Below are positions 1 to 61,792 of a stretch of DNA of 64,000 bases, in pieces. A program made the position numbers and the translations under genes. This DNA comes from Mantamonas sphyraenae STR306 (taxonomy: Eukaryota > Protista > CRuMs). The stretch lies in NCBI GenBank assembly GCA_026936335.1, contig JAPMXV010000007.1, positions 310,001 through 374,000 on the forward strand, in the 5' to 3' direction. Every line of letters begins with the position of its first letter. Position 1 is the stretch's first letter. Below the pieces are notes generated by a model. The model worked only from the letters and a program-made list of their open reading frames with translations, ran no database searches and had not been told where the DNA came from.

Positions 1-1947
1 GCTGCGCCACCGCTGCTGGCTCCGGCCTCGTCCACCGTGGGTGGCTCGACCATAAAGTCGGACAACTGCAGGTGCAGTGGAAAGGCAATGGGCTGGTCGA
101 TTTTGACACGGTCCAGAGTCTGCATGTCGATTTCAAAGCGGGAGAGGACGACATGCAGAACGGGGGGAAGGGTCTTGAGCTTGACGCCGCGCTCGCTGTC
201 CTGGTTGCTTCCACAGTGTTCGCAAAACACGGCGTTGTCGCCAGCCATCTGTTCCACAGCCGTGTACTCGGCCAGCGAGTCGACAATGTTGCGCTTTCCC
301 TTGACCACAATCTGCAGGTCGTAAAAGTTTTCGTCGCGCGTGCGTACGTTGCCGCAGTTCAGGCACTTCATCATGTTGGACAGTTCGCCTCGGTACAAAG
401 CCTCCACACTGTGTTCCGCATCCATCTCCTTGGCGCGCATCTTGCCTTCGATGTTGTCGATGAGCACACGTGCAAGCTCCTGCACATCGTGTTGCACAAA
501 CGTCTGCTCGTCGTCCCAGCCAAAGCTGCACGTCAGTCCAGACGTGCTCAGCGACGACACATCTGCACACTGCAGCCGTGCAAACAGCAGCTGGATCTGG
601 TACATGATGTCTGTGCGGTGTGGATCCTGCTGCACCGTGGCCTCTGCTGAATCGTCCTCCTCATCACTGTCCATGCCGCCCGCAGACTTGCCTCCTGCAA
701 CGCCCGTTTCAGTGTCCTCTTCACTGTCGTCTTCTTTCTTCTGGGCCTTGCTCTTGCTGCCAACCTCCTCGGTCGGGTAGTGGTAGATCAACCGTCGAAA
801 CTCGGGTGTCATGTACAGCAGCTGCACGAGTGAGTTGAGGTAGCAGGTGGCACCTTGGTTCTTGAGTCCCACCAGGTCGTTGTCTGGACGTGTTTGTGCC
901 AACGAGTCGTCGTCGTCGTCGAGCGAGTCGTCGCTGTCGTAGTTGAATCGCGACGGCATGGTTTGCTGGATCCAGTTCATGGTGGCCGATGCAGCCTCAT
1001 TGTTGCTGAAAGCGGTGTGTGAGTGTGTATGGTGTGTGTGTGAGTGTGCGGATGATGGGAAGAGGGGAAATGGAGGGAGAAGGGGGCAAGCGGCCGTCAC
1101 GTACACACTCATCGACGTGTTCTCCATGACAAAGTCCTCAAACATGTCTGGGGTGGTGAGACCGTAGCCGCGCAGGGTCTTTGCGTCTTCGTTGCAGGTA
1201 ATGCCCGAGACGGTGATTCGCTGTTCGCTGGGCAGCGTGCCTGTGCTCTCGAACAGGCGCTCCTTTAGATCACCAATCGTGGTCTCCTCCGTCACGTCCA
1301 CCTGGCAGTACTGCACAATGGTGCCAGCCTCCTTGTAACCAATAAAGATGGACATGGAGCCACTGTACAAAGAATGGCGCACACGTGCGCAGGCATGGTG
1401 TCAGCTGCGGCCGGAGAGGGAAAACGGGAATTCGACCCAAACCAAGCACGAACGGCGACTCACAACGAGCCGCTTCCGATGACGCACACGATGAGGACAC
1501 ACAAGGAGACACGGAAAGAGGCCACGGCAAGGGACGCATGATGCGTGCAGGCGAGTCTGTGTCGCACTTACTCTTCGTTTCGTTCGTTGTCGTAGCCGCC
1601 AAAGGGCAGCTGGTTGGGCTCCAAGCGCACGCCTTCCACGGCCAAGCTCTGCTCAAACAGCTCCCCCGGCGTCATGAAGCGTCCGTCAGCGCCCCACTGG
1701 TTGATCTGCGAAAACATGTCTTCGCTGTCGCCAGCTACAAAGTCGCCGTCGTCGAAATCATCCTGTGTGTGGCGCACACGTGTGTCAGCAGTGAGAAGAT
1801 CGCCTCTCGTCGTCGCACAAAAACTCACTTCGCGGTCCGACCACACAGCAGGCGTGTCGCTGTCACCATCAGAGCTCTGTGTATGTATATGCATTGGGTG
1901 TGTGAGTGTACATGTGTGTCTGTGTGTGTGTGTGTGTGTCGTACCAT
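1..1947 (-). CDS. Ubiquitin-specific protease (peptidase C19, USP7/USP47-like catalytic domain) with N-terminal ubiquitin-like domain; 3' end lies outside the window
   Basis: Missing from the ORF track because it runs off the edge. The minus strand reads LVGLKNQGATCYLNSLVQLLYMTPEFR (Cys box, ~800-880), QHDVQEL, and two CxxC pairs (CLNC, CEHC). A UBL-like segment (TTIGDLKERLFESTGTLPSEQRI...KTLRGYGL) lies at 1105-1362. Predicted exons 1947-1945 (ATG only), 1876-1829, 1762-1572, 1362-1105, 1005-<1 all join in frame through GT-AG introns. The 5'-most exons are less certain than the catalytic exon. Confidence 0.9.
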
Positions 1948-2858
1948 TCTTCAAAGGGGATGGCAAGGGCGACGAGTTTGGGTGTGTCCCGCTGGGCGGT
2001 CTGGTCGTCAACGTGCAATGACGTCCACACCACAGGTTGGCTGGACATCTGCACCATGTATGCCCTGCGTGGTGCATCGCTCATGTTTGGATAGGAGGCA
2101 TGGATGACGAGCGGGTTGATCAGCAGTGCCTGACCCTTGGTCATCTCAATGTCCACCGCATGGTTGTTCAGCCAGCCTTCATCGTTGCTTCCTTTCTCGG
2201 TGTCGACGCTGCGTTCGTTTGCTGCCTCCACCCGTTGTCGCTTGTGGTCGGGTGGTTGGTTCGTCGCTTCGCTTTCCTGCGCCGTGCTTGTGCCCGTGCC
2301 AGATGCAGACGAGTCTTCCTGTCCCGAATTCATTGGTACCATGCGCATGCAGCCGTTGTGCACGGTGGTGTCGTCCAGGGCAATCCACAGTGCAATCGTG
2401 GGCTGCGCGTGTGTTTCCGCGTAGTCTGCGTCTCGATGCCATCCAAAGGCACTGTTGGATGCCCCTGGACCACCCTCTGGCTTCACAATGTACTGTTCAT
2501 TGTACAAGAACAGGGTGCGTGTGTTCATGGCGTCGCGCGCGTGTTGGACGAGCTTTGGATCCACCAGTTGTTCAGACACCGACTCGGAGAGCACCTGAGC
2601 ACGTCGCTGGACATACTCTTGCATGTTGGCACTGCTCCTCAGGTGATCCTTTGTTTCTGAATCCAGGTAGCCACAGCACAGAGGGTCAACAACGCACCCC
2701 AGGTCGGCGACAAGATCCAGCTCCTGATCCACACACCACTGACACAGCGTGTCGATCTCCTCGCATGCCTCATCGACTTGTGCCTGCTCCCAAAGGTCGA
2801 CCACTGCAAAGCCGTGGGTGTCCAGGGTCCATTGGTGGGTGGACGGATGAGCAGACAT
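1869..2858 (-). CDS. Phytanoyl-CoA dioxygenase (PhyH)-family Fe(II)/2-oxoglutarate dioxygenase
   Basis: From ATG 2858: GFAVVD, YIVKP, WHRD (HxD), LWIALDDTTVHNGCMRMVP, IHASYPNMSDAPRRA (distal His and Arg). It ends at 1869 if unspliced (329 aa), or at a splice-created TG|A (1946-1945 plus 1876; 304 aa). Confidence 0.88.
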   Translation of the reverse strand: MSAHPSTHQWTLDTHGFAVVDLWEQAQVDEACEEIDTLCQWCVDQELDLVADLGCVVDPLCCGYLDSETKDHLRSSANMQEYVQRRAQVLSESVSEQLVDPKLVQHARDAMNTRTLFLYNEQYIVKPEGGPGASNSAFGWHRDADYAETHAQPTIALWIALDDTTVHNGCMRMVPMNSGQEDSSASGTGTSTAQESEATNQPPDHKRQRVEAANERSVDTEKGSNDEGWLNNHAVDIEMTKGQALLINPLVIHASYPNMSDAPRRAYMVQMSSQPVVWTSLHVDDQTAQRDTPKLVALAIPFEEWYDTHTHTQTHMYTHTPNAYTYTEL

Positions 2859-2910: not shown

Positions 2911-5004
2911 ATGCTTCCGTTGCTGCAGATCGACCCCAGCATCGGGTGGTGGTTCATCATCATGATCATCATCATCTTTGCGTTGATCCTCGTGGGCAGC
3001 ATCTATGTGTTGGTGTACTACATGGACGAGGAGGACAAGAACCAAGCCTACTTCCCCAAGGTCGTGGTTGTGCTTGGCCTGACTCTCGCTGCCGCCAACG
3101 TCCTCATGCTTCCCCTGGATGTGGCAAACACCAACGAGCAGGTGGGCCTGGGCATGCGCGACACCTGGCAGGTCATGTACATGATCATTGCCTTTGTCAG
3201 CCTCGTCCTCATCCCCTTTGCCATCTTTTACTACGAGGCCGAAGACTCGGAGAACGAGGGAGTACGTTGCGGGTGAAGGTGGAGAGACAGAAGACAAGAG
3301 GGGGTTTGTGGGAGGGAGGGAAGGCGGAGCTGCGAGGGGGGTGTGTGTTGATGATGTGCTTTGTGTGCTGTGTACCCCACAACGACGCTGACCACGCCTC
3401 GCGGACGACACACAACACACTCGCGCACTCACAGAAGGGCCAGCTTTCGACGGCCATTTTCTACGAGATCATGGCACTGATCATCAGCGGTTTGGCCATT
3501 GGCCTCATGTACGCCTTTCTGGGCTACGCTGACATTCCCGTCACGGTGCTCAACGCCTCGTTCGAGCCTGCCTCGGGCTCCATCGGCTGCGCAAACGTAC
3601 GTCAGGGATTCCTCTCACCGCAAGTCCACCCACAGCCTCGCCAGCACACACACAGGCCCACGGACAGGACAGATGCCATGCCATCGAGACTGGCAGCGTG
3701 TCAGACGGTGTGCATGTCGTGTGCACCCTTGTGCTCCGCTGTGGCTGGCGTGTCCTTGGGTTGGCCAAGTGGATTGCGCGCCCTCCCATCGTGAAATCCC
3801 CTTTTTGCTGACACCCCGCTTTGCGCACGCCATGGCCATGCTGTGTGCCCTTCCACACGTTCATTGGTTGCCATCGTACAGTGCAAGCGTATCTACAGCG
3901 TGCTGACTGTGCAGACCACCCTGCCCGTGTACATTGTGGCCATGCTCAGTTTCGTGGGTACGTTTTCACGCCCCTCTTCCTCCTTTCCCGCTTATGTCGT
4001 CGCTGACCCCGTGTCTGCTGTCCCTTGTCGAATGACTCCCTTGTGTTGTGTGTCCCGACGTCATGTGCCGACGCACACGCTCGCTTTCTCCAAACGACAC
4101 ACCGTTTGCCCACACCCTTGCGCACACCCCCAACACAGGTTTCTTCTTGTTCTGCGTGTTTGGCGGCATCGGCATTGTGGCGCTGCCCATCGACCTGATC
4201 CAGGCCTGGTCCGGCCGTCCCAAGTCCATTGAACTGCAGAGCTACAGCGATCAGCGTCAGCAGCTGTTGAGGCGCACAAGGAAACTGATCGACGTGGGCA
4301 AGCAGTGGAAGGAGGAGGAGCGCGCGGGCAACAAGAGCGCACGCAAGAAGCGCAAGTTTTACAACCGCTTCAAGCAGGCCGTGTATCTGCTGGAACGTGA
4401 CCACGAACACCTCAAGATTGCCTACAAGCTCCGTGGTGGCAACCCGCTGTACTATGCAGCCCAGCTCATTTTCGGCATCATTTCGCTCAGCATCTCCCTC
4501 ATGTGGGTGGTGCACATTGTGGGCTACATGATCATTGGCACCTACTTCCCGCCTGCCGAACCCCTGTTGAACAACCTCTTTGTGGCCCTGGACAGCGTGT
4601 GGGGTCTGTTTGGCACGGCCGCATACGGCACCTATGCTTTCTATCTGCTGCTGGCCGTGGTCAAGGGCAACTTTAAGTTTGGCATGCGCTTCTTCCTCAT
4701 GTCCATCCACCCGATGAAGGTGGGTGAGACCATGATGAACTCGTTCCTGTTCAACACGGGCATGATCCTGCTCTGCTCCATCACCGTCACTCAATTCTGC
4801 ACCGACGCGTTCAACATCTACGCCCGCCTGACCATTGCCGACCTCATTTTCAGCAGTCAGGTCAAGTATCTGCGCTTCCTGCGCTACTTCTGGCAGTACG
4901 GCACCTTTGCCTTTCTGGGCTTTGCCTTCCTCACCCTGGTCTTTCTGCTCATCCGTGGCCCCAAGGACAAGGCCGAGTTTATCAATGACGAGGACAGCGA
5001 CTAA
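2911..5004 (+). CDS. LMBR1/LIMR-family multi-pass membrane protein
   Basis: Exons 2911-3261, 3435-3596, 3882-3957, 4139-5004 join in frame with GTACGT donors. Motifs: DKNQAYFPK, VLMLPLDVAN, IPFAIFYYE, FGGIGIVALPIDLI, IHPMKVGETMMNSFLFN. Confidence 0.92.
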
Positions 5005-7764: not shown

Positions 7765-9387
7765 ATGTCCTCGCAAGCAGAGGCGCAGGCACACAAGAAG
7801 CGGGCTTTGGAGGCACAATGGCGGTTTGGCAAGATGAAGCTGGGCACGTTGGTGAAGCAGTTGGACCAGTTTCTAGACATTCTGGCTCTGGTGGGCAGCA
7901 CACGTGTCAACACGCTGAATCGAGAAGGGATCGCACGCATCCACAGGTGGACAGAGTATCTGCAGCAGCTGGTGAGCAAGTTGGACAATGTAAAGCAAGT
8001 GCAGGTGCTCAATCAGCGCCTTGCCATGATCACACGTGCACGGCACCTTCAGCCACCGCTCGACGTGTCCTTCCTTGCTGCAGCCGCCCACCACAGTCTC
8101 GCCACGGTGATTCTGAATCCATGCTGCAAACATGCCGTGCGCGAAGGTATGCTCCGAGCCAACCTGGCCATCGGCACGCAACAGCGGCTGTTCTTGGTGC
8201 GAAAAGAGCAGCAGGAACCGAACAGGAATCTCCACGACGGTGTCGACGACGATATCCAAGACGTGGGTGACGATGAGATGGAGAGCGACGACAAGGATGC
8301 GCTGTATGGTGATGACTTGCACATGTGGCAGCTGGTGAGGGAGAGCACGCGGTCGCATGTGAGCCTGGGCAAGGTGAGTGATTACGGGGAGAGTGTTCAG
8401 GAACTGAGCCGGAGGGCTTTGGAAACACTGACAAGAAGTGAGGAAACGTCTCAGGATCTTGGCATTGCATTGCAGCGCAGGGCGGCGACACGGTGCCTGC
8501 TTTCATGGCAGGAGAACCTTGTGCGAGAGGCGTACCGTGTGGAATCGTCGACCAGGGCAAGTGGCACACCACACACCCTGTGTGTTGACTGGAAACAACA
8601 CTTTCGATCGGAATGCATAGCACAACGGTGCATGGGCATGACGATGCACAGGGAGGCAATGTACCGTGTACAAGTGAAACACAAGAGCTGCGAGGCGGTG
8701 GCATCGGATCTGGCATCCACAGCAGGGCGACACGAGACACTGATGCACTCTGTGGCCTCCATGATGGCGTTTGTAGAGTGGGGATGTTCCGAGGGAGAGA
8801 CGGTGCACACGCGAGTGATGGACAAGTTGTTGGAGAGCGACCAAAGCGAATTGGCACGCAGTCGTCTGCTGAGCCTTCATCCGTGGCTGGCGGCGCATCT
8901 GGCACACATACACATGGCCTACTTTGTGTCGTACATGCAAAATCTGATCAACAGGATGCAAGTTCAGGTGTTGGATGTGCTGCATGTGTGGACACATGCG
9001 CTAGGGACAGCCGAGGAAGAAGCCTCGCAATCCGCAGAGACGGCCCTGCCTGGGCTGGTTACGAGCTGGGGACAGATGCTCGACGAGCTCGTGGATGTGT
9101 ACATACGCGTGGCCAATCTGGTGCACTTGCACACAGTGTGCAAACCGCTACGGTCGTGCTTGACCACCGCCACAGGCATGGGACTGTGCACGCGCCTGGA
9201 CATCCCCACACGGACACATGCAGCTCTGCTACTGAGCGAGATCCCCACTCAGTGTGGCCAGTTGGCCGAGGCTCTCCTGGACGCAGCCTGTGTCGACATG
9301 CTTGCCTCGATGCAGGCAGATGCACGCGTGCTACCTCTGGTCGATCTTGCAGCTGAGATTCTGCAATGGTTTGCGTGCTTCACTTGA
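7765..9387 (+). CDS. Helical protein with Fanconi anemia group F (FANCF)-like N- and C-terminal blocks
   Basis: 540-aa intronless ORF. LVKQLDQFLDILALVGSTRVNTLNREGIARIHRWTEYL aligns by eye with the FANCF N-terminus (LLQHLDRFSELLAVSSTTYVSTWDPATVRRALQWARYL). LLSLHPWLAAHLAHIHMAYFVSYMQNL resembles the FANCF C-terminal helical repeat. The CDS is confident; the family call is moderate. Confidence 0.6.
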   Translation: MSSQAEAQAHKKRALEAQWRFGKMKLGTLVKQLDQFLDILALVGSTRVNTLNREGIARIHRWTEYLQQLVSKLDNVKQVQVLNQRLAMITRARHLQPPLDVSFLAAAAHHSLATVILNPCCKHAVREGMLRANLAIGTQQRLFLVRKEQQEPNRNLHDGVDDDIQDVGDDEMESDDKDALYGDDLHMWQLVRESTRSHVSLGKVSDYGESVQELSRRALETLTRSEETSQDLGIALQRRAATRCLLSWQENLVREAYRVESSTRASGTPHTLCVDWKQHFRSECIAQRCMGMTMHREAMYRVQVKHKSCEAVASDLASTAGRHETLMHSVASMMAFVEWGCSEGETVHTRVMDKLLESDQSELARSRLLSLHPWLAAHLAHIHMAYFVSYMQNLINRMQVQVLDVLHVWTHALGTAEEEASQSAETALPGLVTSWGQMLDELVDVYIRVANLVHLHTVCKPLRSCLTTATGMGLCTRLDIPTRTHAALLLSEIPTQCGQLAEALLDAACVDMLASMQADARVLPLVDLAAEILQWFACFT

Positions 9388-29657: not shown

Positions 29658-32600
29658 ATGTCCAGTCTGCGATTCGAACATTCGCTGCCGGCTCACAAGA
29701 AGTACAGCAAAAGTGTGAGCGGCAAGTCGCGGAACAACAAGGCCACCCTGGCCTCAGTCCGAGGACTGGACGACGAGGAGAACGACGCTTCTGAAGAAGC
29801 CATGCTCGTATGTGGATTCCACCCCGGCGCTCATTTTGCTGTCTGCATGCCACCACACACGAGTTGCTGTGCACCCAGCTGCGTTTGGTCCTGCTTCGCA
29901 GCCTGTGTGTCCCGTGAGGCACGCTCGTGTCACTCGACCGTTTTGCGCGCCCTCAACCCGCCCTTTGCGTACCCCGTCGCGCACGCACTCACACGCCTCC
30001 TCTCGCACCTTCACCTGCAGAAACCGAGTGAATTCATCAAGAGCATTCGGCAGGACACGGGGGACCTGCTGCAGAAGACCGGCCTCAAGCGCAACAAGCC
30101 CGAGATCATCGAGTTCTTGCGATTGGCCGACTTTTCCATCCACACAGAGTGCAATGTCGATGTCGACGACACCATCTTCCAACCCTTCCCCCAGGAGATT
30201 GTGTTTCAGAACTACGAGCCCTTTCAATCTTACGAGCTCGTCCTCTATCTGCGCAACAACGACAAGGCATGTTGGCCCCTCGCCAACGGAAACGCCCTCC
30301 ACCTCGGCCCCGGCTCACACACACGTCCCACACGCACACACAACCGCCCACACCGCACACAGTTTGGCCGCCGCGTGAAAATCACCCCTCCCGACTCGGC
30401 CTACTTTGCCGTGTCTGCCCCCAAGATGAATGTCAAGGCCAACAAGGGCAAGGTTGCGCCGGGCATGGAGGTCTCGGCAACGGTTACTTTCACGCCCGAC
30501 TCCACACGAGATTACCAGTACGACCTCATTGTGGTCACCGAACGCGAAAAGTTCATTGTGCCCATCCGGTGCATTGGTGCACGTGGTGCCCTGGACTTTC
30601 CCGACGCGTTGCACTTTGCCGCGGCACCCGTGAAACACACCACCACGCGCACCGTACTCGTACGCAACGTCGGTGTCAAGCCCGTCAAGTTTGCCCTCAG
30701 CTGCCCCGAGCCGTTTGCCACTGTTTCTGAGGGCTATCTCGACGTCGACGCCTGCACACAGATCGCAGTCGACTTTCATCCGCGGGTGCGTTTTGGCGCG
30801 CGCGCCTCCCGCATTGCCTTCTTCCCCCCTTTCTCCGCGTCCCTGTATCCCACCTGCGCCTGGCGTCGTCCCATGCGCCGTAACTGTGCCTTGCTGACAT
30901 CTGTGTGCTTCTGTGGACATCCGACGTCCCCCCCCCCCCCACAGCAAACGGGTGACTATCAAGCGCCGCTGCTCATCACGTACGACTCGGGCGAGACTGT
31001 CGCCTGCCAGCTCACGGGTGAGGCAGAGGACGTGAACATCCGGCTGGAAAAGAGCACAGTGCGCCTGGAGCCCACGTTCATCTCGCTCAGCAGCCAGGCC
31101 ACGTTTCGCATCTTCAACCGCAGCAACATCACTGCCAAGTTTGCTTGGAAGCGCTATGCGACTGCACACGACGACAATCAGCACCGCATGCGCTCCAACC
31201 TTGAACTGGCCAAGGAGGAGGCCGCCGTAGCCATGGGCGAGCAGTCGGGCCTCTTGTCTAGCGAGGCAGCCGCGTCGTCGTCGTCTTCGCAGAGCAATGG
31301 TAAGTTGCGCTGTGTGTGTGTGTGTGTGTTGCCACGCGTTGCCTTTATCTAACACTTGCACCCTCTGCGTGTGTGGTGACACTGTTGCAGTCGACGCCCA
31401 GTTGTCGTCTACCATGCTGGCACGGCAGTTCAAGCAGCTGGGCAAAGACATCGAGGCTGATCCTCTGCTGTTTCAAGACGAATGCTTCACCATCACGCCT
31501 GAGGAGGGCACGGTGAGGCCCGGCTCGCAGGTGGAGGTGACGGTGTTGTTCAATCCCATCCTTGCGCAGCAATATTCGCGCACCGCGTTTTTGGAAATCA
31601 GCGGACGCGAAAGCAGGCTGCCGCTACAGATCAAGGCACCCGGCCTGGGACCGCACGTTGCGTTCAGCTACGATTTCCTGGACATCGGTGGCGTGTACGT
31701 GGACACCATCCACCAGTACGAGCTGTTCCTGGAGAACCAGGGCCAGATTCCAGCCGACTTTGAGATGGACCCAGTGGTGTCGTCGTTTGGCCAGCGCTTT
31801 GCCATCGAACCCACTCATGGCCACCTGGATGTGGGCCAGAGCCAACGTGTGCAGGTGACATTTGACTCGTCACAGTGCCTGGGCACGTTTGCCGAGCAGT
31901 TTGACTGGCGCGTGGGCGGCTCGCCCGAACCGCTGCACATTACCATCCGCGGCGAAGTGGTCGGCCCCAACTTTAGCTTTGATGTGCACAGCGTCGACTA
32001 TGGCATCATCAGCTACGGGTTCCTGAGCACGGCCACGTTCTATCTGCAGAACACGTCTGAAATCCCGCTTCTGTACGCCCTGCGCATCCCCAGCAACAAG
32101 AGCTTTGGCGAGCAGGAATTTGAGATCACGCCGTCCACTGGCGCAGTGCGTGCGTTTGGCAAACAGCAGATCCAACTCAACTTTACACCCGGCAGCGTGG
32201 CCAAGTACGACACGAAGCTGGTGGTCGACGTGGACAACGTGGGACCCAACCTGCTGTCGATTCCCGTGCGCGCAGAGGCGGTCATCCCCAAGATCCGGCT
32301 GTTGACAACGCACCTGGACTTTGGCGAGTGCTACATCCGCCACACATACACCATGGAGGTGTTGTTTTCCAACGAAAGCGATCTGCCGGCGACGTACGAG
32401 CTGCTCACCCAGGACGAAGACAGCAAGAACCTGGCCTTGTACGACGTGGACGAAGACCATGGCACCATCCCCGCAGGCATGCCACAGATCCCAGCGGAGC
32501 GCATTGTGCTTCTGACCATCACGCCGCAGCGTCTTGGCAGCATCAGCCTGCAGGCGGGATTTAGCATTGTGGGCAGCGACCAGCCTCCGTTTATGATCAG

Positions 32601-35600
32601 CATCAACGCGACGTGCGTGGGTCCGTACGCCACGCTGGAGCCCGAGCGGGTGCGGTTTGGCCAGATGGAAGTGCTGCACAGTCAGGAGCAGACGGTGCAT
32701 GTGCACAACCCGACGCCTATCCCGCTGCCCTTCAAGGCATTTGTCAAGGGCCGTGGCTCTCGTTTTGCTCTGTCTCACGCAGACAGTGTGGTGGCGCCGG
32801 GCGACACGCTAGACCTGACGGTCGAGGCGCACCTGGACGACACCAAAAAGTTTCAGGACGAACTGTGCATTGTGGTCACCGAAGGCCAAACCTACCGCGT
32901 GCCCATCAGTGCCACAGGCACAGGGACAACCATCAGCGCAGACGCAGACATGGAAATGATTGACTTTGGCGACCAGTTTAGCAACCGGTCGACGCGCAGG
33001 ACGTTCCGCCTGGAGAATCAGGGCCGCCGCCCGGCCACGCTGAAGTGGACGATGGAAAAGATCAACGGAGAGCCTGCGAGCGGGTCGCGAGAGCGCCGCA
33101 TGGCTGCTATCCGTGCAGGCAAGCAGCCGAAGCGACTGGAGTCGACGTTTGTCGTGACGCCAGACAAGTTTACCGTGGACGGCCACACAGGCTTTGAACT
33201 GGAAATCGAAGCGGCCAGCGATGCGGCACGCGAGATTGTGGAGGAGTGGGTGTGCACATCCACAGTGGGCAACAAGACGACGGTGGTGTTCCGCTCGACA
33301 CTTCGAGCCAACTTTGTAACGCCGCTGCTGGAGTTTGACCCGCCGCAGCTTGCGTGGGAGTTTCTGAACCGGTCGCACGACACGGAGCGCATTACAGAGT
33401 ACAAGCAGCTGCGTGTGCGCAATGGCAGCGCTCTGCCGCTGGAGTTTGCGATGTCGTGCGCAGCGCCGTTTGAGTGCACGTCGAACCAGCTGATTTTGCC
33501 GTCGGGTGGAGAGACGAGCATCAACGTGGGCTTCGACGTGGAGTGGAAGAAGGACACCGTGTCGCAAGAGGTGAACGAAAACATTGTGGTGAGCTACGCG
33601 GAGCATCCGCAGCGTGACCACATCCCACTGACGGGCAGCATTTGGTTCCCAAACGTGGCGATGGATCGGCAGGAGTTGAGCTTTGGCTCGCTGCTGAACG
33701 ACACAGAAAGCCGTGAGTTTGTGGTGGTGAGCAACCCGGGCAAGCTTGTGTCGCGTTGCGAGTGGACGTTTGTGGAGGGGTCGCTGTCGGTGACGTCGAT
33801 CACGCCGACAACGGCACGCACGCAAGAAGTGTCGGAACCCGAGATGGACATCCACGAGGTGTTTGACATCGTGCCGCGGGTGTTTGAGCTTGCGCCGGGC
33901 GAGTCGCAAAAGATCGAGTTTGTGTTTTACGGGTTTGAGGACACGCGGATCGCTGGAACGGCCATGTGTCTGGTGGACGGTGGACCGGAGTACCGCGTGG
34001 AGTTGCAGGGCGAGGCGTCGTCGGTGCACTACCGGCTGGATCAAAGCGAACTGGACTTTGGCGTGGTCGCGTTTGACCAGGTGGTGGAGAAAGAGATCAA
34101 GCTGATCAACCCAGGCAAGGTGCCGTTTGATTTTGACGTGCAGATGGACAAGGTGTCGCGAGCTGATGTGGTGGAGGTGCAGCCGATGTCGGGTCAGATT
34201 GGCGCGGAATCGATGCGCACGCTGCGCGTGCGCTTCCTTGCGTCGGGCCCCGAGCAAATCGAGGAGCAGTTTATGATCAAAGTGGCGCACTTTGAGCCGG
34301 ACATTGTGACCGTGCGTGGTTGTGGTGCCTTCCCGAGGCTGTCTGCGTCTTTGCCGCGGCTGGAAACGGATGACATGGAGGGGTTGTTGGAACGTGCGCG
34401 CCAGGTGCTGCAGGAAGGTGGAAATTGGCACCCGATGACGGTGGAGTACCGCCCGCCTGCGACGGCGATGCCCATGACGGCGCGCCCTGGGACACGTGCG
34501 GCCACGGCCATGGCCAGCAGCAGCAAGCAGGTGCTGAGCATCGACACGTCCGCAGGTGTGGGTGTGGATGTGAAAGGCAAGGGCAAGGTGGAGGCTGAAA
34601 GAGCGCCAGAGGAAGAGGATGACGAGGAGGAAGACGACGGCGACGTGGAGCTCGATGTGCCCGTGATGGGCATGCGTTTGGGAGAAGCAGAGTTGCTTGC
34701 CGAGGCGGAGCGTTTGACGGTGTTGGATCAAATCGATGCCCACGCGGAACGGCTGGCTGAGGTGCGAGCGAGCAGGGGACTGGTAAACACGGCCGGGTCA
34801 AGCAGCACGCGCGGACGACCGAGCACTTCTGGGCGTGGGAAATCGCACCTGAGTAGCGTGGCGCGTGATCTGCCGCACGCGCGTGTGGTGTTGGCCAACT
34901 ACGTGCTGGACTTTGGCTTTGTGGTGAAGGGAACTTCAAAGAGCAAGAAGTTCACGTTGCGCAACACCGGCTTTGGGCCAATCTCGTTTGACGTGGACAA
35001 GCGCAGGCTGCAGGGAATGGGCGTTGACGTGAAACCCGACCGTATGCTGCGCATGGTGAGCGGCCCGCAAGGAGAAGACGTGGAGTTTACGGCGGTGCTG
35101 CAGTCAAAGAGCAGCGCGGTGCAGGTGGGCGACTGGACGGGCGAATTCCCGATCCGAGTGAAGAACGGGCCGACGGTGATGGTGCACATGAAGGCACAAG
35201 TGGAGGTACCGGACGTGTACTTCAACCGTGAGCGCCTGGACTTTGGCAGCGTGGCTGTGGGCCAGTGCAAGGTGATTACGGTAAAGATTTGCAACCCGCA
35301 GAACGTGCCGTGCGAGTGGTCAGCCATGAGTTTGCGTGGCCAGAAGGACGAAGAGGGCAACTCGATCGGGTTTGGTGCGTTTAGCGTATCGCCTGCGCAG
35401 GGTACCTTGGCGCCTGGGGAAGAGCGTCTGGTGGAAGTGAAGTTTACGCCGGAGGAAGCACGCGAGCACGGGGTGAAGATTGGTGTACGTGTGACGCTGA
35501 ACCAGCGTCAGCGCGTGCTTGTGTGCCGCGGAGAAGGACAGGCGACGCGTGTTCGTCTGTCGAGCAACAAGGTGACGTTTGAGCCGTTGCTGCCGTACAC

Positions 35601-38600
35601 GACGCAAGAGAGCAAGAGTGTGGTGCTGTACAACCCGTGCGAATACCCGATCGAGGTGTACTCGCTGGACTTTGACACGCAGTACCTGCACGAGCAAGAA
35701 ATGGTGCGTGCGATGCCCGAGTTTCACACGGACGAGGAGGACGCCAAAAAGAAGGAGCTGCATATGCCTCCCCGTGGGCCGGGCGAGGGGCTGCCCGCGC
35801 CGATTGTAGCCAACTACCAGGCCATCAAGGAAGCGGAGCGAGCGGCAATGGAGGAAGAGCAGCGTGCGCTTGCAGAGGCGCGTGCGAAACAAGTTGCCGA
35901 GGAAGAAGCAGCAGCGGCGGCAGCGGCAGCGGAAGCAGGCGAGGATGTAGAGGCAGCTGCGGGAGCAAACACAACATCTGAGGGCGAAGATGGCAAGGGA
36001 CGTCCTGGTACGTCGTCGTCGAGGCACTCGCACAGCGGACGCAAGCGATCTGGACGGGGATCGTCGCGCGGGCGCAGCAAGGACAAGCAGCGCAAGGAAA
36101 AAGGCGGCGAAGCAGAGACGTTGCAGGTAGACACTGCAGCAGCGGCGGAGGAAGTGAATGTGCTGACGATTGACTCATCGCTCGCAGCGACGCCGAGGAG
36201 TAGCGCGAGCGCAGAAGAGGCGGAGGCGTCGTCGATGGCAATGGCCAGCCCTAGGTCTGTGAACGGAGTGGGCGAAGTGGAAGCAGCTGTGGCTGAGGCC
36301 GGAAGCGGACCGCAGAGTGGCCCAGCGCAGCCTGAACACGCGGTCAACGTGATTGTGTACGGACCGCCGCAGAGCGGAGTGACAAGCCAGGCGATGGCGC
36401 TGGGCAAGTACTACCAAACGCCTGTTGTCAGCGTGGATGCCGTGCTGGAGGAAAGCATGAAACAAGAAACCGGGCTTGGCATGGTGCTTCGCCACACGCT
36501 GGAGGAGATTGAGCGCAAACGGGCGGCCGGAGAGCTGGGCACTGACGGCGAAGCGGCACAGGGTGACGAAAGCAGCGTGTCAGCAAGCGGGCCTGGGTCG
36601 GGGAGCAAGACTGTGGCCGGACGACGTGCAGGAGGGTCGACGACACGGCGTGGGTCGCGTTCGGGCAGGCCGAACAAGGGCCGTGCGGGAGCAGGCGGAA
36701 GCAAGGCGGCTGGCGGACGCGGAAGCGGACGCAGTGGCCTGGGCGAGAGCGGAGAGAGCGAAGAGCAAAACGAAGCCAAGGAGGAAACAGCGGACGATCC
36801 GCGATACGCGCCGATGGGTTTGCTGGTGGCCATCCTGAAGCAGTTTCTGCGCGGCGAGGCGTTCCAGCGCGGCGTGGTTCTGGATGGACTTGCCAGCAGG
36901 TTTACAGCGGACGAGCACATGACGGCACGGGTGTTGGAGAGGCTGGCAAAGGGAGAAGAGGCTTCTTGGTACGTGGTGGTGCTGGACGTGTCGCCGCGCA
37001 AGGTGCTGGAGCGAGACCTTGCGGAGCGGGAAGCAGCAGCGCTTGCGGAGAAACAGGCAGCGCTGGATGCACGGGAGAAGGAGATTGCGTATGTGCAGGA
37101 GGTGACGGAGGATGAGTACGAGGCGATGAGCGAGGAGGAACAAGCGGAGTACGACAAACGGCTGCGCAAGTATGTGGATGAGAAGCGTGCACTGGAGAAA
37201 GAACGGCGCGAGGCAAAAGCAGAGCGTGAAAGGCTGGCGGAAGAAGAGCGCAAACGCGCAGAAGTGGCAGCAGCGGAAGAGGAGCGAGCAGCACAGCTGG
37301 CGGCGGAGGCCGAGGCGCACAAGCGCACAGGGCGTCGTGGAACGCGTGGAGCACGCACGGCACGACGTGGTGGTAAGGAGAGCAGCGGAAAAGAGATGGG
37401 TGTGCCTGCAACTGGCGGGGAGAGGGAGTTGTCGCCGCGGGAAGGCGGTAAACAAGGGCGTGCGAGCAGCTCGATGAGCGGCAAGAGCGTCGAGACGGCG
37501 GAGTCTGTGGGTGGCGGCGAGGAACACGGGGACCAGGAGGCGGAGACGGCCATGTCGCTGGACAACGAACAGTTTGACGCGGAGCTTGTGGTGCGCATGA
37601 AGGCTTTCCAGAGCGTGTTTGGCAAGGTGGCGAGTGCATTGCAGCTTGTGTTGGATGACGAGACAAGCGACCTGGCACAGCTGATGGCCGCCCACAAGGC
37701 GGAGGAGGAGGCAGCAGCGGCGGCAGCAGCTGAGGAGGAGATGAAGCATGGGAACCGAAGCGGGCGACGCACGAGCTCGCGAGGGAACAGTCGGGCGGCG
37801 GCGGCAGCAGCAGCCGCAGACGAAGAAGGGGAAGGCGAAGAAGCACAGGAAGCGGTTGACGAGGAGGAGAAGGAAGCTGTGGTGAAGTCTGTGGTTGTGC
37901 CCGGAAACTTGGACCAAGAACAGGCGATGGGTGTGATGCAGGTGTTGCTTCCGCTGGTGCCACCCATGGGCGACGAGGACGAAGGCAAGTTGCATATCCC
38001 GGGACCCGTAACGTATGATCTGTACAAGTACCCTCTGAAGACGAAGCCGCGAGTGCCAGTGACAAACTTTCGCATTGCGACCGTGCACCACCTGACTGAA
38101 GAGGAGATCCGCGCCAAGGCACAGGAGATGGCGGATGCCGCCGCCGCCGCCGCCGCAGCAGCAGAGGAGGAAGCACGCCGAGGACGTCGCGGGAAGCGCA
38201 GCAAGGAGAAGGAGACACACAAGGAGGTACCGAAGGAAGAAGGCGCCACGGGAGAAAGCGGCGTGGAAGAGGAGGACCCGCTGCTGGAGTGGATGGACAA
38301 GGTGCAAGTGTTTCACACCGACGAGACGCAGACGCGATGGGTGTTGCAGCCGTTTGAGAACGTGGAGCTGCTGGTGAGCTTTGAAGCGAGCCAGGTGGGC
38401 GACTACGTATCGCAGCTGGGCTTCCAGGCTGTGGGCGGACAAAAGATCCATACAGTGACGGTACAAGGCGTGTGCGCGTTGCCTCAGGTGAGCGACAACG
38501 TGCGCAACGTGTACATGAACCGACGCGCAGGGAAGCGCATGCGTGTGCCGACCAATGGTGTGTTGCAGAACGCCACGGAGCGGCTGCTGGAGGCGGAGAA

Positions 38601-41600
38601 GATCAAACGTGGGCCGTCGAGGCTGAGTGTTGCAACAAGCAGCTCGCATCGCATGGCACGCAGCATGTCGCGTGGCACGCAGCGGTCAGGAGCAGGCACG
38701 CCCGGGCCAAAGAAGGTGCAACTTGGCGCACTGGACCCGGCGCTGCTTGTGCGTGGTCTCGTAGCGAAACACTACGACCCAGCGAGCGATGTGTTTGAAT
38801 TTGGCCCGCTGCTGACGACCAAGGAGCCACTGCGGAACGAAATGGGCCAGAGTCGCAACCCGGAGCACTTTGAAGAGCTGCGCATCACGAACAACGGTCT
38901 GTTTGCAACGGACGTTCAGTTTGTGTTTGCCAACGACGAGCTGGGCGAAGTGTTTACAGTGGAGCCGAAGCAGATTCACCTGGAGGTGGACGAGACGCGC
39001 ACGGTGGTTGTTTGGGCATACCCGCGAAAGGACGGGGAGTTCAAGGATGCGCTTGTGTGCGTTGTGAAGAACAGTCCAAAGGTGGTTCAGTTTCCCATGC
39101 GCTGCGTGGGCAGCACGCCGTGTGTGGAGCTGGAAGGAGCGGAACTTGACTTTGACAAGATGAAGCTCGGCAGCGAGGACACAAAGACGGTGCTCGTGCA
39201 CAACCGCACGCCGTTGCCTGTGGTGTTCCGCGTGCAGGAGAACTCATTGCCTGCAGAGGCGTTTATGGTGTCGCCGATGCAAGGGTACATTGCTGCCAAT
39301 GGTTCGCAGGCAGTGGAAGTTCGCTTTTGCTCGGAGGAGGAGCGCAAGTTTAGCGGGAGCTTCGAGGTTGCTGTGAGCGACCCGTACGGAGTTTCTTCTG
39401 GGCTGGATGTGATCGAAGAGGTCATGGAGAGTGCAGACGAGTCAGAAGGGGCTAAGGAGGGCGAAGGCGACAAGGGAGATGTGCAGGCGCAGGTCCGTCC
39501 TGCAACGCCGGCTTGGACACCGAACCAGGTGGAGACGGTAAAGGTGGAGGCAGAGGCGTTTGAGATTGCACTGGACTTTGCGTTCCCGAAGGAGGAGAAG
39601 ATTCTGGATCTGGGCGTGTTTCGCGAAGTGCTGCACGAACAGTTTACGATCAAGAACAACGGCAAGTACGACGCACACTTTGCGCTGGAGGTGAACGAAG
39701 CGCTGGGGGCGGTGATGGAGGTGACGCCTTCGGAAGGAGTGCTGAAGGCAAACGACAAGCAGCCGCTGACGGTTGCGGTGCACGTGAACACAGGCTGCGA
39801 GATGAGCTACGACGGGATGGGTCTGACATGCCGCGTACTGGAGGCCGAGAGCGGAGAGGCACAGAAGGAGGTGGGCATCCATGTGCGTCTGCAGAGCGTG
39901 TACTCGAAGCCGAGCGTGACGCCTGCGCGTGGCATCAACTTTGGGCCGTTGAACTTTGAAAACACAAAGCGACGCGTGGTGGAAATCAGCAACCACGGCG
40001 AATTTGATTTCCGCGTGAACTTTGTGCGCATGACACGGGAGGTAGAGGAGCGGGAGGACGAGCGTGTGCGTGCAGTGCAACGAGAGAAGCGCGGTCTGCA
40101 GGCGGAACTGGAGGCACGCGCAATTGAAGAGGCTGTGGCCAACACGGGTAGCGAGGAGGGCGAGGCGGAGGCAGGCAAGGAGCCAGCGAAGGAGACGGGG
40201 AAAGAGGGTGGCAAACAGGAAAAGGAGGGACGTCCAAAGTCGAGCAAGGGGGACAAGAGCGAGAAGGGCCGCAAGGGCAACCGTACGTCGCGGCGCCTCA
40301 GCAGCCGGGAGGGAAAGAAGCGAGGCAGTGGATCAGGCAGCAGCAACGCGGGGGCGAGCAGCAGCAGCAGCAGTAGCAGCAGCAGCAGCGGTGTGGGTGG
40401 TGGTGTTGTTGGCTCGAGCAGTGACACACACGGCAACTCGGCGGGCGCGGTGGGACTTGGCGAGGCCTTGAAGACGGGCAACTTTACGATCCGTCCGGGG
40501 GCTTTGATGGTGCCACGCGGCGAGAGCGTGCAGGTGGAGATCGAGTTCCATGCGGGCGAGGCACGTGTGTACACGGAGGTAGTGGGCATCGACGTGGTGG
40601 ACCGAGATCCGCGGGAGCGCATGATGGCGTTTGAGCTTGTGGGCGAGTCTTGCGTGCCTGGAATCAACACACAGGACATGGCAGACATCTTTGAGGAGCA
40701 GACAGTGACACAGCACCTGGACGTGTTCCACACGAAGAGCTCGACGTACGCGGAGGCAGACCGGATCTTTATGTTTTCGCCCGTTGTGAGCGGATACGAA
40801 GCACGCGAGCGGGTGAAGATCATGAACCCGTACAAGGTGGCGTGTGACGTGGACCTGCGCATTGTAAGCCGTGGGGGCGTGGGAGGGAGCAAGAGCGGGA
40901 ACGATGCGGCCGCGTTTGACGTGCAGCCTGCACGTCTGCACATCCCGATGCACGAGCACAGGTATGCTACGGTGTATTTCAAGCCGGACGAGCTGCACCA
41001 GTATGCAGCGGTGTTTGAAGCGACTGTGGAAGGGGGCGTGGACGAGAGCAGCGCCAGGCTGAGTTTTGACGTGCGAGGCGAAGGTACGCTGCCACACGTG
41101 AACCTGGAGCTTCCCAACGGAAAAATGGCGAATGCGTTGCAGTTTTCGCGGCTGCTGCTTGGACGTGAGCAAGTGCTGCGGTTCAATGCGCGCAACGACG
41201 GAATCATCCCGGCCAAGATCAAGTGCGAAATGGCAAACGACCCCGGGTTTACGTTTATGCAGCGCGGTAGCAGCCTGACGGTAGGCGCAGGACAGTCGCG
41301 TCAGCTGGAGGTGCGTTTCCACCCGCAAGAAAGCAAGAAGTACGCGGTGCCGCTGAAGATTGTGGTGGACAAGAACGAGTACGCGGACACGGTGGTGCTG
41401 CTGCAGGGCGAAGGGTACCAGGAAGATGTGACGTTTGACGAGCTGCCGGACGGTGTTGTGAATGACGAGCTGCGCTTTGGCGACGTGGCGATTCACGAGT
41501 CTGTGCAACGCGGGTTTGTGCTGCGCAACAACAGCGAGCGCTGGTTCAGGTACGAGTGGCCGGAGCACGCACACTTTGGATTCACGCCGCGGTGTGGCCA

Positions 41601-44600
41601 TTTGGCACCGTACGGTAGCAAGGCACTGGTGGCAACGTTTGAGGCCAGCGAGCCGGTGCAATACGACAAGGTTGCGCTGGGCCTGCAGGTGTGCGAAATT
41701 GCACACGTGGAGGGAGAGGACGGAGAGGCGTGGGACAGCGAGATGCAAGTCGTACGCTGGGTGGACGAGGCACAGTGGAAGGTGGAGCAGGAGGCCAAGG
41801 CACGGCGTGCGGAAGAGGAGAAGCGCCGGGCTGAGGAAGAGAAGCGCCGCTCGGAGGGCAAGCGTGGCAAACGAGGCACAAAGAGGCAGTCGTCGAAGCA
41901 GCGTATGGTTGCAGAGGAGATGGAGGTAGCAGTGCCGCGGAAGCAGGGCGAGGCGTCGGCAGGCGAGTCGTCAGGCAGCAGCAGCAGCAGCAACGGCGGC
42001 GGCAGTGGCAAGCCTCGCAAGGTTGTGGAAGCGAAGGAGGAGCCAATGCATGAGGTGGTGAAAGAGAGCGAGCGGGAGCTTGTGATGACGGTGAGCGGGG
42101 TGGCGGACGAGGGTCGATACGAGTGCGACACGGAGAACATTGTGTTCCGAGACACGATGATGTTCCAGACGCGTGCGTTTGAGTTTCCTGTGCGCAACCC
42201 AAGCAAGACCGGGATGCAGTTCCGATGGTATGTGCTGGACGAGCTGAACGACGTGGTGGACGAGCACGCGCCCTTCCAAGTGCAGCCCGAGTCTGGGGTG
42301 ATTGCAAGCGGGGCGGTGCAGAACTTCAAGGTGCGATTTGCACCGCGGGACGTGGATCAATACGGCAGGCGACTGGCGTGTGACATCACCAACCTGGGCG
42401 ATGAGTGCGAGCCGCTTGTGATTGGAGTGCTGGGCGAAAGTGTACGCCCGCTGTGCCACTTTGAGCTTGCGGCAAGTGACTACCTGAGCGGAGAGCGTCG
42501 CAACCCGGAGCGACGTGGACCGGGTGGGAAGCTGGGACCGCTGGATAGCAACACCCAGGTGATTGAGATGGAGTCGTGCGGCATCAAGGTGAAGAACACG
42601 AGGCGCTTCCACGTGTTGAACCCGACGAATGTGTCGTACGAATTTGAATGGGAGAGCCACGACGTGATGGGCAAGGGCAAGCGCAGCGCATTCCGATGCG
42701 TGACGCGCAAGGGCCTCGTGCACAGCGGGAAAAAGTTTGAGATGGTGTTTGAGTACACACCGGAGAGCCTGGACCTGGTGGAGTCGTTCTGGACCTTCCA
42801 CATCCCGAGTGAAGGGTGCAGCGTGCCTGTGCTGCTTGTTGGCCAGGCGCGTGAGCCGAATGTGTACCTGGAGCAGAGTGCGATCCAGTTCAACGAAATG
42901 CTGGTGGGCCGCAAGGCACAGCAGGAAGTTGCGCTTGTGAACGACGAGGTAGTGCCGTTTTCGTTCAGTGTGGACAAGCGGTCGCTGCAGGGAGTGGGCG
43001 ACGCGCTGAGTGTGTCGCCTCTGAACGGAGTGGTGGGCCCGCACTCGCAAACGCCACTGAAAGTCCGGTTCAGGCCGGGCATGGAGAAGGAGTTTAACAT
43101 CAACGCGGTTGTGAACGTGCTGCGCAAGCCGAGCAAGGTGGTGTTGAATGTGAAGGGCGAAGGGTACCGCATCCACGAGGAGGTGGTTGTGGTGAGCGAG
43201 GAGGAGGAGCAGGGCATGGTGGAAGCAGCGAGCAGCAGCAAGGCAAAGGGCAAAGGCAAGGCAGCACATGGTGGAAGGCAGGTGCTTGTGCCGAGCAAGA
43301 GCGCGGGCCAGGCAAACGTGGTGGACTTTGGTCATGTGCATGTGAACGCGAAGCAGGTGAAGCGGATGGTGCTGCTGAACACGGGCAAGTTCAACTTTGA
43401 CTTTACGTTTACCGGTGGCGAGCACCGGTCGGTGTCGGTGTCGCCTGCTCTGGGCACGGTGCCGAAGGGCGAGCGAGTGACGGTGGAGTTGACTTTCCAT
43501 CCGCGAACACCGATGCAGCTGCGCAACGTGGAGCTTGTACTGAAGATCACCAACGGCCCGCGGTACACCATTGCGGTGCAGGGGGTGGGCAAGCGGCCGG
43601 CGCTGACGTTCTCGTGGACAGAGGCAGACTTTGGGCCGCAATTTGTGTTTCGTCAGGGGATGGAGCCGTACCAGAAGAGCTTGCTCGTGCGCAACGACGA
43701 CCAGGAGGAGATTAGCTTTGACGTGCCGTTTGTGCAGAACGAGTGGCTGGAGGTGCAGGCGTCGCCGACGATCCTGCAGCCGGAGCAAGAGGTGGAGATC
43801 CCGGTGCTGTTTACGCCGCGGGGAGTGAGCAAGTACGCAGAGGTGATTGACTTTCACGTGAACTCACTTGTGAAAATGCAGGTGACTGTGGCGGGGGAGG
43901 GTGTGGAACCGCACGTGGAGATGAGCAACAGCCAAGTTCGGAGCGTGTCGTTTGGGGCACTGCGTGTGGGAGAACGGCTGCAACGCACGGCGAAAATGGT
44001 GAACCGATCAAAGATTGGCGTGCGCGTGAAGATGACGACACTGGAGCGACTTGCGCGGTACGGGGTCACGGTGAAGCCGGCGGAGGTGTCGCTGAAGCCG
44101 AAGGAGTCGTGCAACCTGCAGCTCACGTTTGCGCCGGGAGAGCGTCTGATTCCGTTCCAGGAGGCGTTGGAGATGGAGATTATGGGCACTGGGATGCGAC
44201 AGGAACTGTTGGAGCTGCAGGGAGCGTGCAACGGAGTCGAGGTGAAGCTGGAAAACGAACGTGTGGCGTTTGGGGCGGTGAGCAAGGGATCGTTTGCGAA
44301 GCGCAAGCTGCAACTGCAGAACATGGGAGACATCGGAGTGCGGTTCAAGGTTCGCGGTATGCGTGCGCCGTTCAGCGTGACGCCCAGGGAAGGGTTTGTG
44401 CACGCGGGAGTGGACATGTCGCTGGAGCTTGGGTTCGCACCGCAGGAGCTGGATGGAGACATCGAGCTTGACGGGGTGGAGTGCGTGATTGACGACGAAA
44501 GCGGGGTGGAGCGTGTACTTCCGCTGTCGCTGAGCGGCATGTGTGTTGCGCAGGAGGCCGAAGTGGAACCTGTGGAGTTTACGGTGCCTGTGCGAGAGTC

Positions 44601-46542
44601 GCAGAGCAAGCATGTGACGCTGACGAACCGCAGCCAGGACAAATGGCACATTGTGCCGGTGTTTTCGGACGCAACGTGGAGTGGTGCGGAGTATGTGGAT
44701 GTGCCGGCGGGGCAGACTGTGAAGTACAAGATCGAGTACCGCCCGGTGGTGATGACTGGCCACAACGTGGAGGACGGTGGACATGGGAGCGGAAGTGGAA
44801 GCGGGAGCGGGAGCGGCAAGGGCAAGAAACGGGTGACGGTGGGCGAGAGTAGCAGTGGAAGTGGAAGTGGAAGTGGAAGTGGAAGTGGGAGCGCGCGGCG
44901 TCCGACGAGCAGCCGCAGGAAGAAGGGAAGCAGCAAGGGGACAGGCAGCAGCAGCAGCAGCAGCAGCGGGGGCGGCAAGAGGCGCAAGGGAGAGGATGAG
45001 GAGGTGGACCTGGGAGAGTCGTCACAAGGAGGAAGTGGAGGAGAGGATGTGGAGGACGAGAAGCTGCATCGCGGAAGCGTGTTCTTTCCGCTTCCGGACG
45101 GGACAGCGGTGCTGTACAAGCTGCACGGAAAGGTGCTGCCACCTCTGGCAAGCGGAGAAGTAGAGGTGAAGGTGGCTGCAAAGACGGCACACATCGAGGC
45201 GTTGCAAGTGAGCAACTGGCTGGCGAGTGCTCAGCGGTTTGTGGTGAAGAGCGAATTCGACGGGGACGAAAGCGTGAGCGTGGGTGGACTGGAAAAGATG
45301 GATGTGCCGGGCCAGTCGACGCGTGTGTACCAGTTGAACTTTTTCGCGCACAAGCCAGGGACGGTTCGTGGCCGGGTGACGTTTACGAACGCGGAGACCA
45401 GGGAGTACCAGTTCTTTGAGTGCGTGTTCCGAGTGGGCGAAGCGTCTGTGGTGGAGGAGTTTGTGCTGGACACGCCTGTGCGTCAGGAGGTGGTGCGGAC
45501 GGTGGAGGTGAGCAACACGCTAGATCGGGAGGTGAAGATGCGTGGAACGTGCGAGCACGGGGACGTGGTCGTGCCGAGTGAGGTGCGGGTGGGACCAAAG
45601 AGCACTGCACGCGTGCCAGTGTCGTACTTGCCGCTGGTGGTTGGAGAGAGCGTGTCCGCAGTGCGGTTTACGAGCGAAGAGCTGGGCGAGTTTGTGTACA
45701 AGGTGCGGCTGGTGGGGATGGCAGCGGCGGCGGAGAAACCGCTGACGTTCAAGAACGAGCTGGGGATGGCAAGCGTGCTGACGTTCCGGTTCATGAGCTA
45801 CACGCGCAGCAAGTGCGAGTACAGCGTGAGTGTGCAAGGCGACGATGGCGACTTTGTGGTGGACAAGAGCGTGAGCGCGCCTGCGGCAACAGGAGCACGT
45901 GGAGAGGGAGTGGAGGTGGGACTGGACGTGGGATTTGAGCCGACGCGTGTGGGGGAGTCGCGAGGGACACTTGTGGTGCGATCCAACGTGGGCGGGGAAT
46001 ACCGTGCAGTGCTTGTGGGCCATTGTGTGGCAGCGACGCCGCAGGGCCCTGTGAGCGTGAAGGGCACGGGCACGACGGGGATCACGTTCAAGAACGTGTT
46101 TGCATCGTCGATGGAGTTTACGTACAGTGTGGACAACCCGCGCTTCACGGTGACAAAGAAGAAGGAGACGGTGGGAGGGAAGAAGAGCACGCGAATCGAC
46201 GTGGGATTCAACGCAGGGGAGCTGAGTGTGGGCGCAGGCGTGGGATCGTCGAGCTCGAGCAGCAGCGATGGAGGAGCATTGAGCAGCAGCAGCTCGACGG
46301 GCGGAGCGGGACGCAAGACGAGCCGCAGCGGACGCAAGACCAAGCGCGGAAGCAGCAGCAAGAAGAGCGGAAGCGGAAAGGGCAAGGAGCGGGAGGAGGA
46401 AGGAGGGGAGGAGGAAGTTGCAGACGGAAGTGCAGAGGTTGTGAATGCGTTTGGAGGGACGGCGGTGATGGGCAAGCTGGTTGTGGTTGCGGCGAGCGGG
46501 GAGAGTTGGGTGTGGTACCTGCGTGGAAGCGTGGAGAAATGA
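29658..46542 (+). CDS. HYDIN: HYDIN, axonemal central-pair protein (~5441 aa)
   Basis: Exons 29658-29807, 30021-30266, 30363-30785, 30945-31299, 31391-46542 total 16326 nt in frame. FQPFPQEIVFQNYEP...LRNNDK, KVAPGM, VTEREKFIVP, many ASH/Ig-like repeats (LDFG...V.N), an adenylate-kinase-like block near 36340, FEFGPLL, and C-terminal WVWYLRG. Confidence 0.96.
44787..44892 (+). repeat. (GGAAGT/GGGAGC)n hexamer runs encoding GS repeats within HYDIN
   Basis: Two GSGSGS tracts in a low-complexity insertion. Confidence 0.85.
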
Positions 46543-61787: not shown

Positions 61788-61792
61788 AAGGC

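Follow-up and report, generated by a model that had tools for sequence, protein, structure and literature searches.

A PhyH-family gene and a USP47-like gene that may overlap at one intron in Mantamonas sphyraenae

Layout of the PhyH/USP junction

In Mantamonas sphyraenae STR306, the end of a gene for a PhyH-family Fe(II)/2-oxoglutarate dioxygenase appears to overlap with the beginning of a USP47-like deubiquitinase gene on the same strand. The best reading of the locus, which I regard as somewhat probable, is that these are two separately capped, overlapping monocistronic genes to which one intron is common. Transcription of the USP47-like gene would begin within the final ~20-70 coding bases of PhyH, and the first coding exon of this gene would be an ATG alone, which removal of the intron 1944-1877 would join to the following exon. 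The PhyH transcript would begin near 2880 and cross the same intron, the splicing of which would produce a family-typical ...LAIPFEE* end, and its cleavage would fall within USP exon 2 or intron 2. In a fraction of PhyH mRNAs the intron may be retained, with the 3′ end placed right behind the TGA at 1869 by an AATGCA hexamer. Each protein would thus be made from its own cap by normal scanning, with no translational coupling. The reading frames, the quality of the splice sites, the ends of the homologues and the gene spacing across the genome are observed; the splicing, the transcription start within PhyH and the site of PhyH cleavage are inferred.

The window is a stretch of 64,000 nucleotides (positions 310,001 to 374,000 of contig JAPMXV010000007.1, hereafter C7), and positions are those of the window unless prefixed by a contig. 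On the minus strand, the putative USP start codon ATG (1947-1945) shares bases with the final codon of PhyH and with the TG of its stop codon. It is followed by a GTACGA donor (1944-1939) and, at 1879-1877, by a CAG acceptor, which together delimit a CA-rich candidate intron of 68 nt (1877-1944). When this is spliced to 1877, the PhyH CDS (1945-2858; 304 aa; Pfam PF05721, E 3e-27) ends with ...AIPFEE*, and base 1876 supplies the A of its divided TGA stop codon. The same splice puts the ATG in frame with MSSDGDSD... and, through three further introns, with the ubiquitin-like (UBL) and UCH domains. Those introns are 1828-1763 (66 nt, with a GTGAGT donor, a CTGAC branch point and a CAG end), 1571-1363 (209 nt, GTAAGT...CAG) and, in the gene model, 1104-1006 (99 nt, GTACGT...CAG). 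Exon 2 (1829-1876) begins with SSDGDSD..., exon 3 (1572-1762) encodes an acidic N-terminal extension, exon 4 (1105-1362) encodes the UBL domain (PF00240, E 6e-7), and the last exon (1-1005) encodes the UCH catalytic domain (PF00443, E 1e-35) and extends as one ORF (L007) past the window to G000:C7:307234. On re-reading the minus strand, the coordinates, the splice-made PhyH stop codon and the USP-frame ATG of the initial annotation were all found to be correct.

Other outcomes are encoded in the same bases. If the intron is retained, PhyH reads 25 more residues, a low-complexity tail, to a TGA at 1871-1869 and becomes 329 aa long. Splicing at a second AG, the GAG that ends at 1875, would create an in-frame PhyH-USP fusion. 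Two elements were absent from the initial annotation: a third in-frame acceptor for a fusion, CAG at 1860, and an in-frame ATG within the intron at 1894-1892 (MHIHTQ-SSD...), which is part of the AATGCA hexamer (1890-1895). Upstream, an LMBR1-like gene (2911-5004, plus strand; PF04791) diverges from PhyH, and the two ATGs are 52 nt apart (2858-2911). A search of the assembly (25,061,354 bases in 78 contigs) for a second copy of the locus matched repeat tracts only.

The candidate intron and the PhyH terminus

Splice sites were scored with a gene finder built on 264 kb of contig C7 (C7:110001-374000). The 71 genes modelled there are purely predicted, and a few of the models merge tandem genes or carry wrong starts. 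Acceptor 1877 belongs to the top 1.7% of all AGs and falls in the 69th-73rd percentile of modelled introns. Donor 1944 is weak, being in the 15th percentile and outscored by 14% of all genomic GTs, and it belongs to the GTACG class, which is common among modelled donors (24 of 110). A branch-point-like CTCAC lies at 1906-1902, and its A is 26 nt away from the intron's 3′ end (the modelled median is 31.5). In short, the content is intron-like and the length and acceptor are typical of modelled introns, with the donor on the weak side. An alternative acceptor at 1920 was rejected; it would leave a 25-nt intron without a branch point and break the USP frame. Farther down, USP intron 2 has a donor in the top 0.6% of all GT and an acceptor in the top 0.03% of all AG. 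The coding score of exon 2 is 0.5 in the USP frame against -9 and -6 in the other frames, and that of exon 3 is +23 against -38 and -32.

The PhyH protein passes the PF05721 cut-off and has the HxD...H iron ligands. In the alignment, its Met1 coincides with the starts of the homologues, H141-D143, H253 and R264 are invariant, and a LAIP motif stands at the C-terminus. The HxD...H and terminal motifs are common to a eukaryotic PhyH-like subfamily ending with LA[VI]P (P0002, P0009). The terminal A[VIL]P motif occurs in 56 homologues, of which 54 end no more than 21 residues after it (median 7.5) and none has a tail longer than 38 residues. After this motif, the spliced form of PhyH has 3 residues and the unspliced form has 28. 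On the grounds of the splice-site quality and this agreement of the spliced end with the homologue termini, the intron 1944-1877 is probably real.

The same data bear on the idea that the locus is one gene, in which PhyH and UBL-USP are joined in frame through acceptor 1875 or 1860, giving a main product of ~1,720 aa. Both acceptors preserve the frame, and the gene finder did pick the 1860 fusion, though its scoring penalises stops and starts. However, I consider this explanation highly improbable. Acceptors 1875 and 1860 rank in the 2nd and 13th percentiles, against the 69th for 1877; 57 of 66 introns end at the first AG past the branch point, while 1860 would skip two AGs; and an AGAG end occurs in 0 of 128 introns with a consensus donor. 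Nor do the homologues resemble a fusion: besides the short tails of the motif-bearing PhyH proteins, no USP domain was found in ten PhyH relatives scanned and no PhyH domain in six USP relatives, including the best ones (P0152 and P0153). A fusion as the main product is therefore unlikely from sequence comparison. It had been proposed that the choice between 1877 and 1875 could switch between two proteins and a fusion; with the GAG right behind the CAG, these acceptor ranks and the lack of fusion-type homologues disfavour such a switch.

The start of the USP gene

The USP model was compared with protein and domain sets exon by exon. The whole protein is ~1423 aa in length and, judged by its UCH domain, its N-terminal UBL and the USP47-type domains of its best relatives, the gene is USP47-like. 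Its orthologues include P0152 (MMETSP; 35% identity) and P0153 (Phalansterium; 32%). P0152 starts with MSED..., continues with ~60 acidic residues and a UBL (residues 63-134 align with exon 4), and then has UCH. Since its acidic extension precedes the UBL, it has the same order as the USP model starting at 1947. USP47-like deubiquitinases share the domain order of P0152, that is, acidic extension, UBL, UCH and a long C-terminal region. For the acidic extension in exon 3 itself, protein searches found no homologue. Both proteins of the locus are ordinary in themselves, although they are only 30-35% identical to known relatives. Exact-sequence look-ups of the PhyH variants and the neighbouring proteins in a protein collection gave no match, and no Mantamonas relative was recognised among the protein and metagenome search matches.

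Where does the USP transcript begin? The last 40 coding bases of PhyH were compared with the 40 bases before divergent start codons, using 44 modelled starts, in a post hoc test. In likeness to a 5′ leader they rank in the 97-99th percentile among CDS ends and in the 70-75th percentile among real leaders. Across 2200-1700, the leader-like composition peaks in 2020-1960 and nowhere else, and an insertion in PhyH that is absent from most homologues adjoins this segment. The putative transcription start and 5′ UTR of the USP gene would be placed within 1948-2020, a segment that begins in this insertion. In a synonymous-codon control that kept the amino acids fixed, P was 0.002 in a first-order model and 0.12 in a second-order model. 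These results are moderate evidence that the codon choice at the end of the PhyH CDS is leader-like, which would favour a promoter of its own for the USP gene.

On the other hand, the USP protein may be made on its own transcript from ATG 1894, 1717 or 1355, with ATG 1947 unused and the intron being at most the last one of PhyH, or just a CA-rich intergenic tract. ATG 1894 shares the frame of exon 2, ATG 1717 lies in exon 3 behind a 150-nt spacer that would be ordinary for this genome, and ATG 1355 in exon 4 would provide the first Met of a UBL fold. All three have better start contexts (48th, 86th and 55th percentiles of modelled starts, respectively) than ATG 1947, the context of which is weak (18th percentile). 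Their upstream regions tell otherwise; the 40 nt before 1894 and 1355 reach only the 5th-32nd percentile of leader likeness and those before 1717 the 16th-43rd. Furthermore, exon 2 and the segment 1762-1718 score as coding in the USP frame and are joined in frame by the strong intron 2, and P0152 has its ~60 acidic residues ahead of the UBL. The second residue would be His for ATG 1894, as in 1 of the 44 modelled starts, while the Ser encoded after ATG 1947 is the commonest one (17 of 44). I therefore regard a start inside or below the intron as rather unlikely.

Gene ends and ATGA stop codons

A stop codon overlapping with a start codon invites comparison with operons, and the ends of the 71 modelled genes (C7:110001-374000) were analysed. 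The most enriched hexamer is AATGAA, which was found at 20 of 71 gene ends where 0.5 would be expected, while AATAAA does not occur at any of the 71. Variants of AATGAA found at gene ends are AGTGAA, AATGGA, ATTGAA and AATGCA, the last one at 5 of 71 ends against 1 expected. Judged by position and enrichment, AATGAA is a probable lineage-specific poly(A) signal; a literature search found no paper on AAUGAA in this lineage. The hexamer often contains the TGA stop codon itself.

This has a consequence for the overlap. Of the 53 modelled TGA stops for which the neighbour is known, 15 are ATGA (12% expected; p 0.001). For 13 of these 15, however, the neighbour is convergent, so that no gene could begin at the ATG, and 9 of the 15 read AATGA. 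Since ATGA stops are mostly convergent and often lie within AATGA(A), they are likely a genome-wide by-product and not by themselves a sign of an operon; a probable AAUGAA signal that often contains the UGA stop would yield frequent "operon-like overlaps" in this genome. Candidates for ATGA overlaps in this genome thus need a test of gene orientation first. At PhyH/USP, unlike in the convergent cases, it is plausible that the overlap involves a real start.

Under the criterion of PMC7896298, a hexamer resembling a poly(A) signal is as frequent in tandem upstream genes (13 of 18) as in convergent genes (32 of 52), against a CDS background of 9%. After the PhyH stop, no AATGAA was found up to the USP exons, and 26 of the 71 modelled genes likewise have none of the listed variants. 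Candidate signals for PhyH are a weak AGTGAG (1829-1824) across the intron 2 donor and AATGCA (1895) in the intron. The latter would fit a PhyH mRNA that retains the intron and terminates just past TGA 1869. Splicing also makes an AATGAG at the PhyH stop, a hexamer that is not enriched at gene ends.

Gene spacing

In the same 264 kb of C7, divergent modelled pairs have a median distance of 70 nt from ATG to ATG, with five pairs at 29-52 nt. Convergent pairs have a median of 65 nt from stop to stop, including four at 10-16 nt and one overlap of 16 nt, and tandem pairs have a median spacer of 107 nt. Divergent and convergent pairs cannot be polycistrons, yet they are equally tight; this suggests that leaders are short and that transcripts often reach into neighbours. 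According to the gene models, packing is tight in all orientations, the neighbours are unrelated, and spacers are too short for UTRs. Trans-splicing of a spliced leader was rejected as a cause of the packing, there being no excess of YAG before starts (33 of 71, against a background of 52%). The published transcriptome has 9,255 contigs with a mean of 2,218 nt, compared with 9,416 genes with a mean of 2,282 bp (PMC10492846). About one transcript contig per gene is weak evidence against widespread polycistrons.

Several individual loci were noted in the course of this survey. At G000:C7:138254-138269, two convergent modelled genes share 16 coding bases. In the PhyH/LMBR1 spacer (2858-2911) and other divergent pairs at 29-50 nt, both leaders and a shared promoter would have to fit very little DNA. 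At 61787-61793 (plus strand), the stop codon of a very long ORF is embedded in a terminal AGTGAA, and an ATG (MEKLERFF...) follows 5 nt on, making a very tight tandem junction. The modelled tandem genes L012/L011 (G000:C7:258517-258530, minus strand) are separated by 12 nt; none of the poly(A)-signal variants follows the upstream stop, and the downstream start is tentative. In the model, the first exon of the upstream gene of this region consists of the ATG only. ORFs that run without interruption for 9.7-15.3 kb were found at 31231-46542 and 52068-61787 (plus strand) and at G000:C7:143772-157430, 184317-199535 and 203666-217219 (minus strand). An ORF at 7765-9387 (plus strand) has an N-terminal FANCF match (PF11107, E 1e-5). 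At G000:C49:188486-193513, two pairs of Ras-family matches with identical scores lie 3.3 kb apart, either through a recent duplication in tandem or through a repeat in the assembly.

As a whole, two overlapping monocistronic genes would be the best-supported arrangement. The small spacers in all orientations, the leader-like PhyH end, the signals on tandem upstream genes, the ends of the PhyH homologues, the MSED...-UBL-UCH order of P0152 and the strong intron 2 upstream of ATG 1717 all point to it. The weak donor, the weak context of ATG 1947, the lack of AATGAA after the PhyH stop and the small, post hoc leader test speak against it. If it is true, gene packing would be extreme in this free-living, deep-branching eukaryote, with an intron that is the last for one gene and the first for the next, and with a promoter in a CDS. 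The interest is modest and lies mainly in annotation; gene finders fuse such pairs, as the one used here did.

Comparison with coupled and overlapping genes

The initial annotation had left a choice between a spliced bicistronic mRNA and a USP promoter inside the PhyH CDS. The latter is best supported, with the end of PhyH ranking so high in leader likeness. In the former, PhyH translation would terminate at the splice-made UGA, and ribosomes would restart at the overlapping AUG for USP. The AUGA geometry is exact once the intron is spliced to 1877, no AATGAA separates the PhyH stop from the USP exons, and eIF2D is encoded in the genome. Nevertheless, a coupled bicistron is poorly supported and seems unlikely. 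The PhyH CDS holds 20 AUGs (90th percentile of density) and the PhyH start context ranks best of all modelled starts, which makes leaky scanning implausible, and the ATGA stops of this genome are mostly a by-product of the probable AATGAA signal in convergent genes. The functions of PhyH and USP are unrelated, and two fungal PhyH loci showed no PhyH-USP linkage. In addition to eIF1 and eIF2D (L030, L031), the genome encodes UPF1, UPF2 and Mago (G000:C55:382314, C34:195121, C42:180740); a genome search gave no match for DENR, which is itself uninformative. With these NMD genes and three junctions behind the first stop, a bicistron would be an NMD target unless reinitiation is efficient, although reinitiation can shield an mRNA from NMD (PMC10275272).

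The nuclear polycistrons of green algae (PMC7896298; PMC11291117) resemble this locus in their very close, co-oriented ORFs, and some proven bicistrons at Auxenochlorella loci include overlapping stop and start codons (PMC11291117). Leaky scanning is the demonstrated mechanism in the algal bicistrons (PMC11291117), and the algal features are a weak first start, few upstream AUGs and no upstream poly(A) signal. In contrast, PhyH has the strongest start and 20 AUGs, and the tandem upstream genes here keep a poly(A) signal.

Caliciviruses and influenza B have an AUGA overlap after a long ORF (PMC5972666, PMC10275272), as does this locus after the predicted splicing. Viral reinitiation after a long ORF requires a TURBS with a UGGGA core (PMC5972666). 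No UGGGA was found in the last 120 nt of PhyH; a CGGGA at 1991-1987 is one base off the core, and its presence by chance is likely enough. It is paired in the MFE fold and unpaired in the centroid fold, and a motif 2/2* stem that would expose it is not evident. There is no unusual fold at the overlap (z -0.5) and no Rfam match, and this is a nuclear spliced gene in a genome with NMD genes. Apart from the overlap itself, the locus does not appear from its sequence to have the tested features of algal polycistrons or TURBS. The full chain of events, namely a spliced bicistron in CRuMs with an AUGA built by splicing, reinitiation behind an ORF of 304 codons in the absence of a canonical TURBS, escape from NMD and a minor 1860/1875 fusion, is quite unlikely; a true bicistron would add to the few cellular cases in which ribosomes reinitiate behind a long ORF.

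Antonospora locustae and Encephalitozoon cuniculi, both microsporidia, offer a closer parallel. In these genomes (PMC2474625), transcripts overlap and span several genes, unrelated neighbours are separated by very short spacers in all orientations, as they are here, and control elements are inferred to have shifted inside adjacent genes. The flagellate M. sphyraenae differs in being free-living, in having many normal introns and in the shared intron that joins its predicted overlap, completing one stop codon and following one start codon. By analogy, the PhyH/USP arrangement may work like the overlapping transcripts of these compact genomes, and an intron that is the last for one gene and the first for the next is an unusual variant among the systems compared here.
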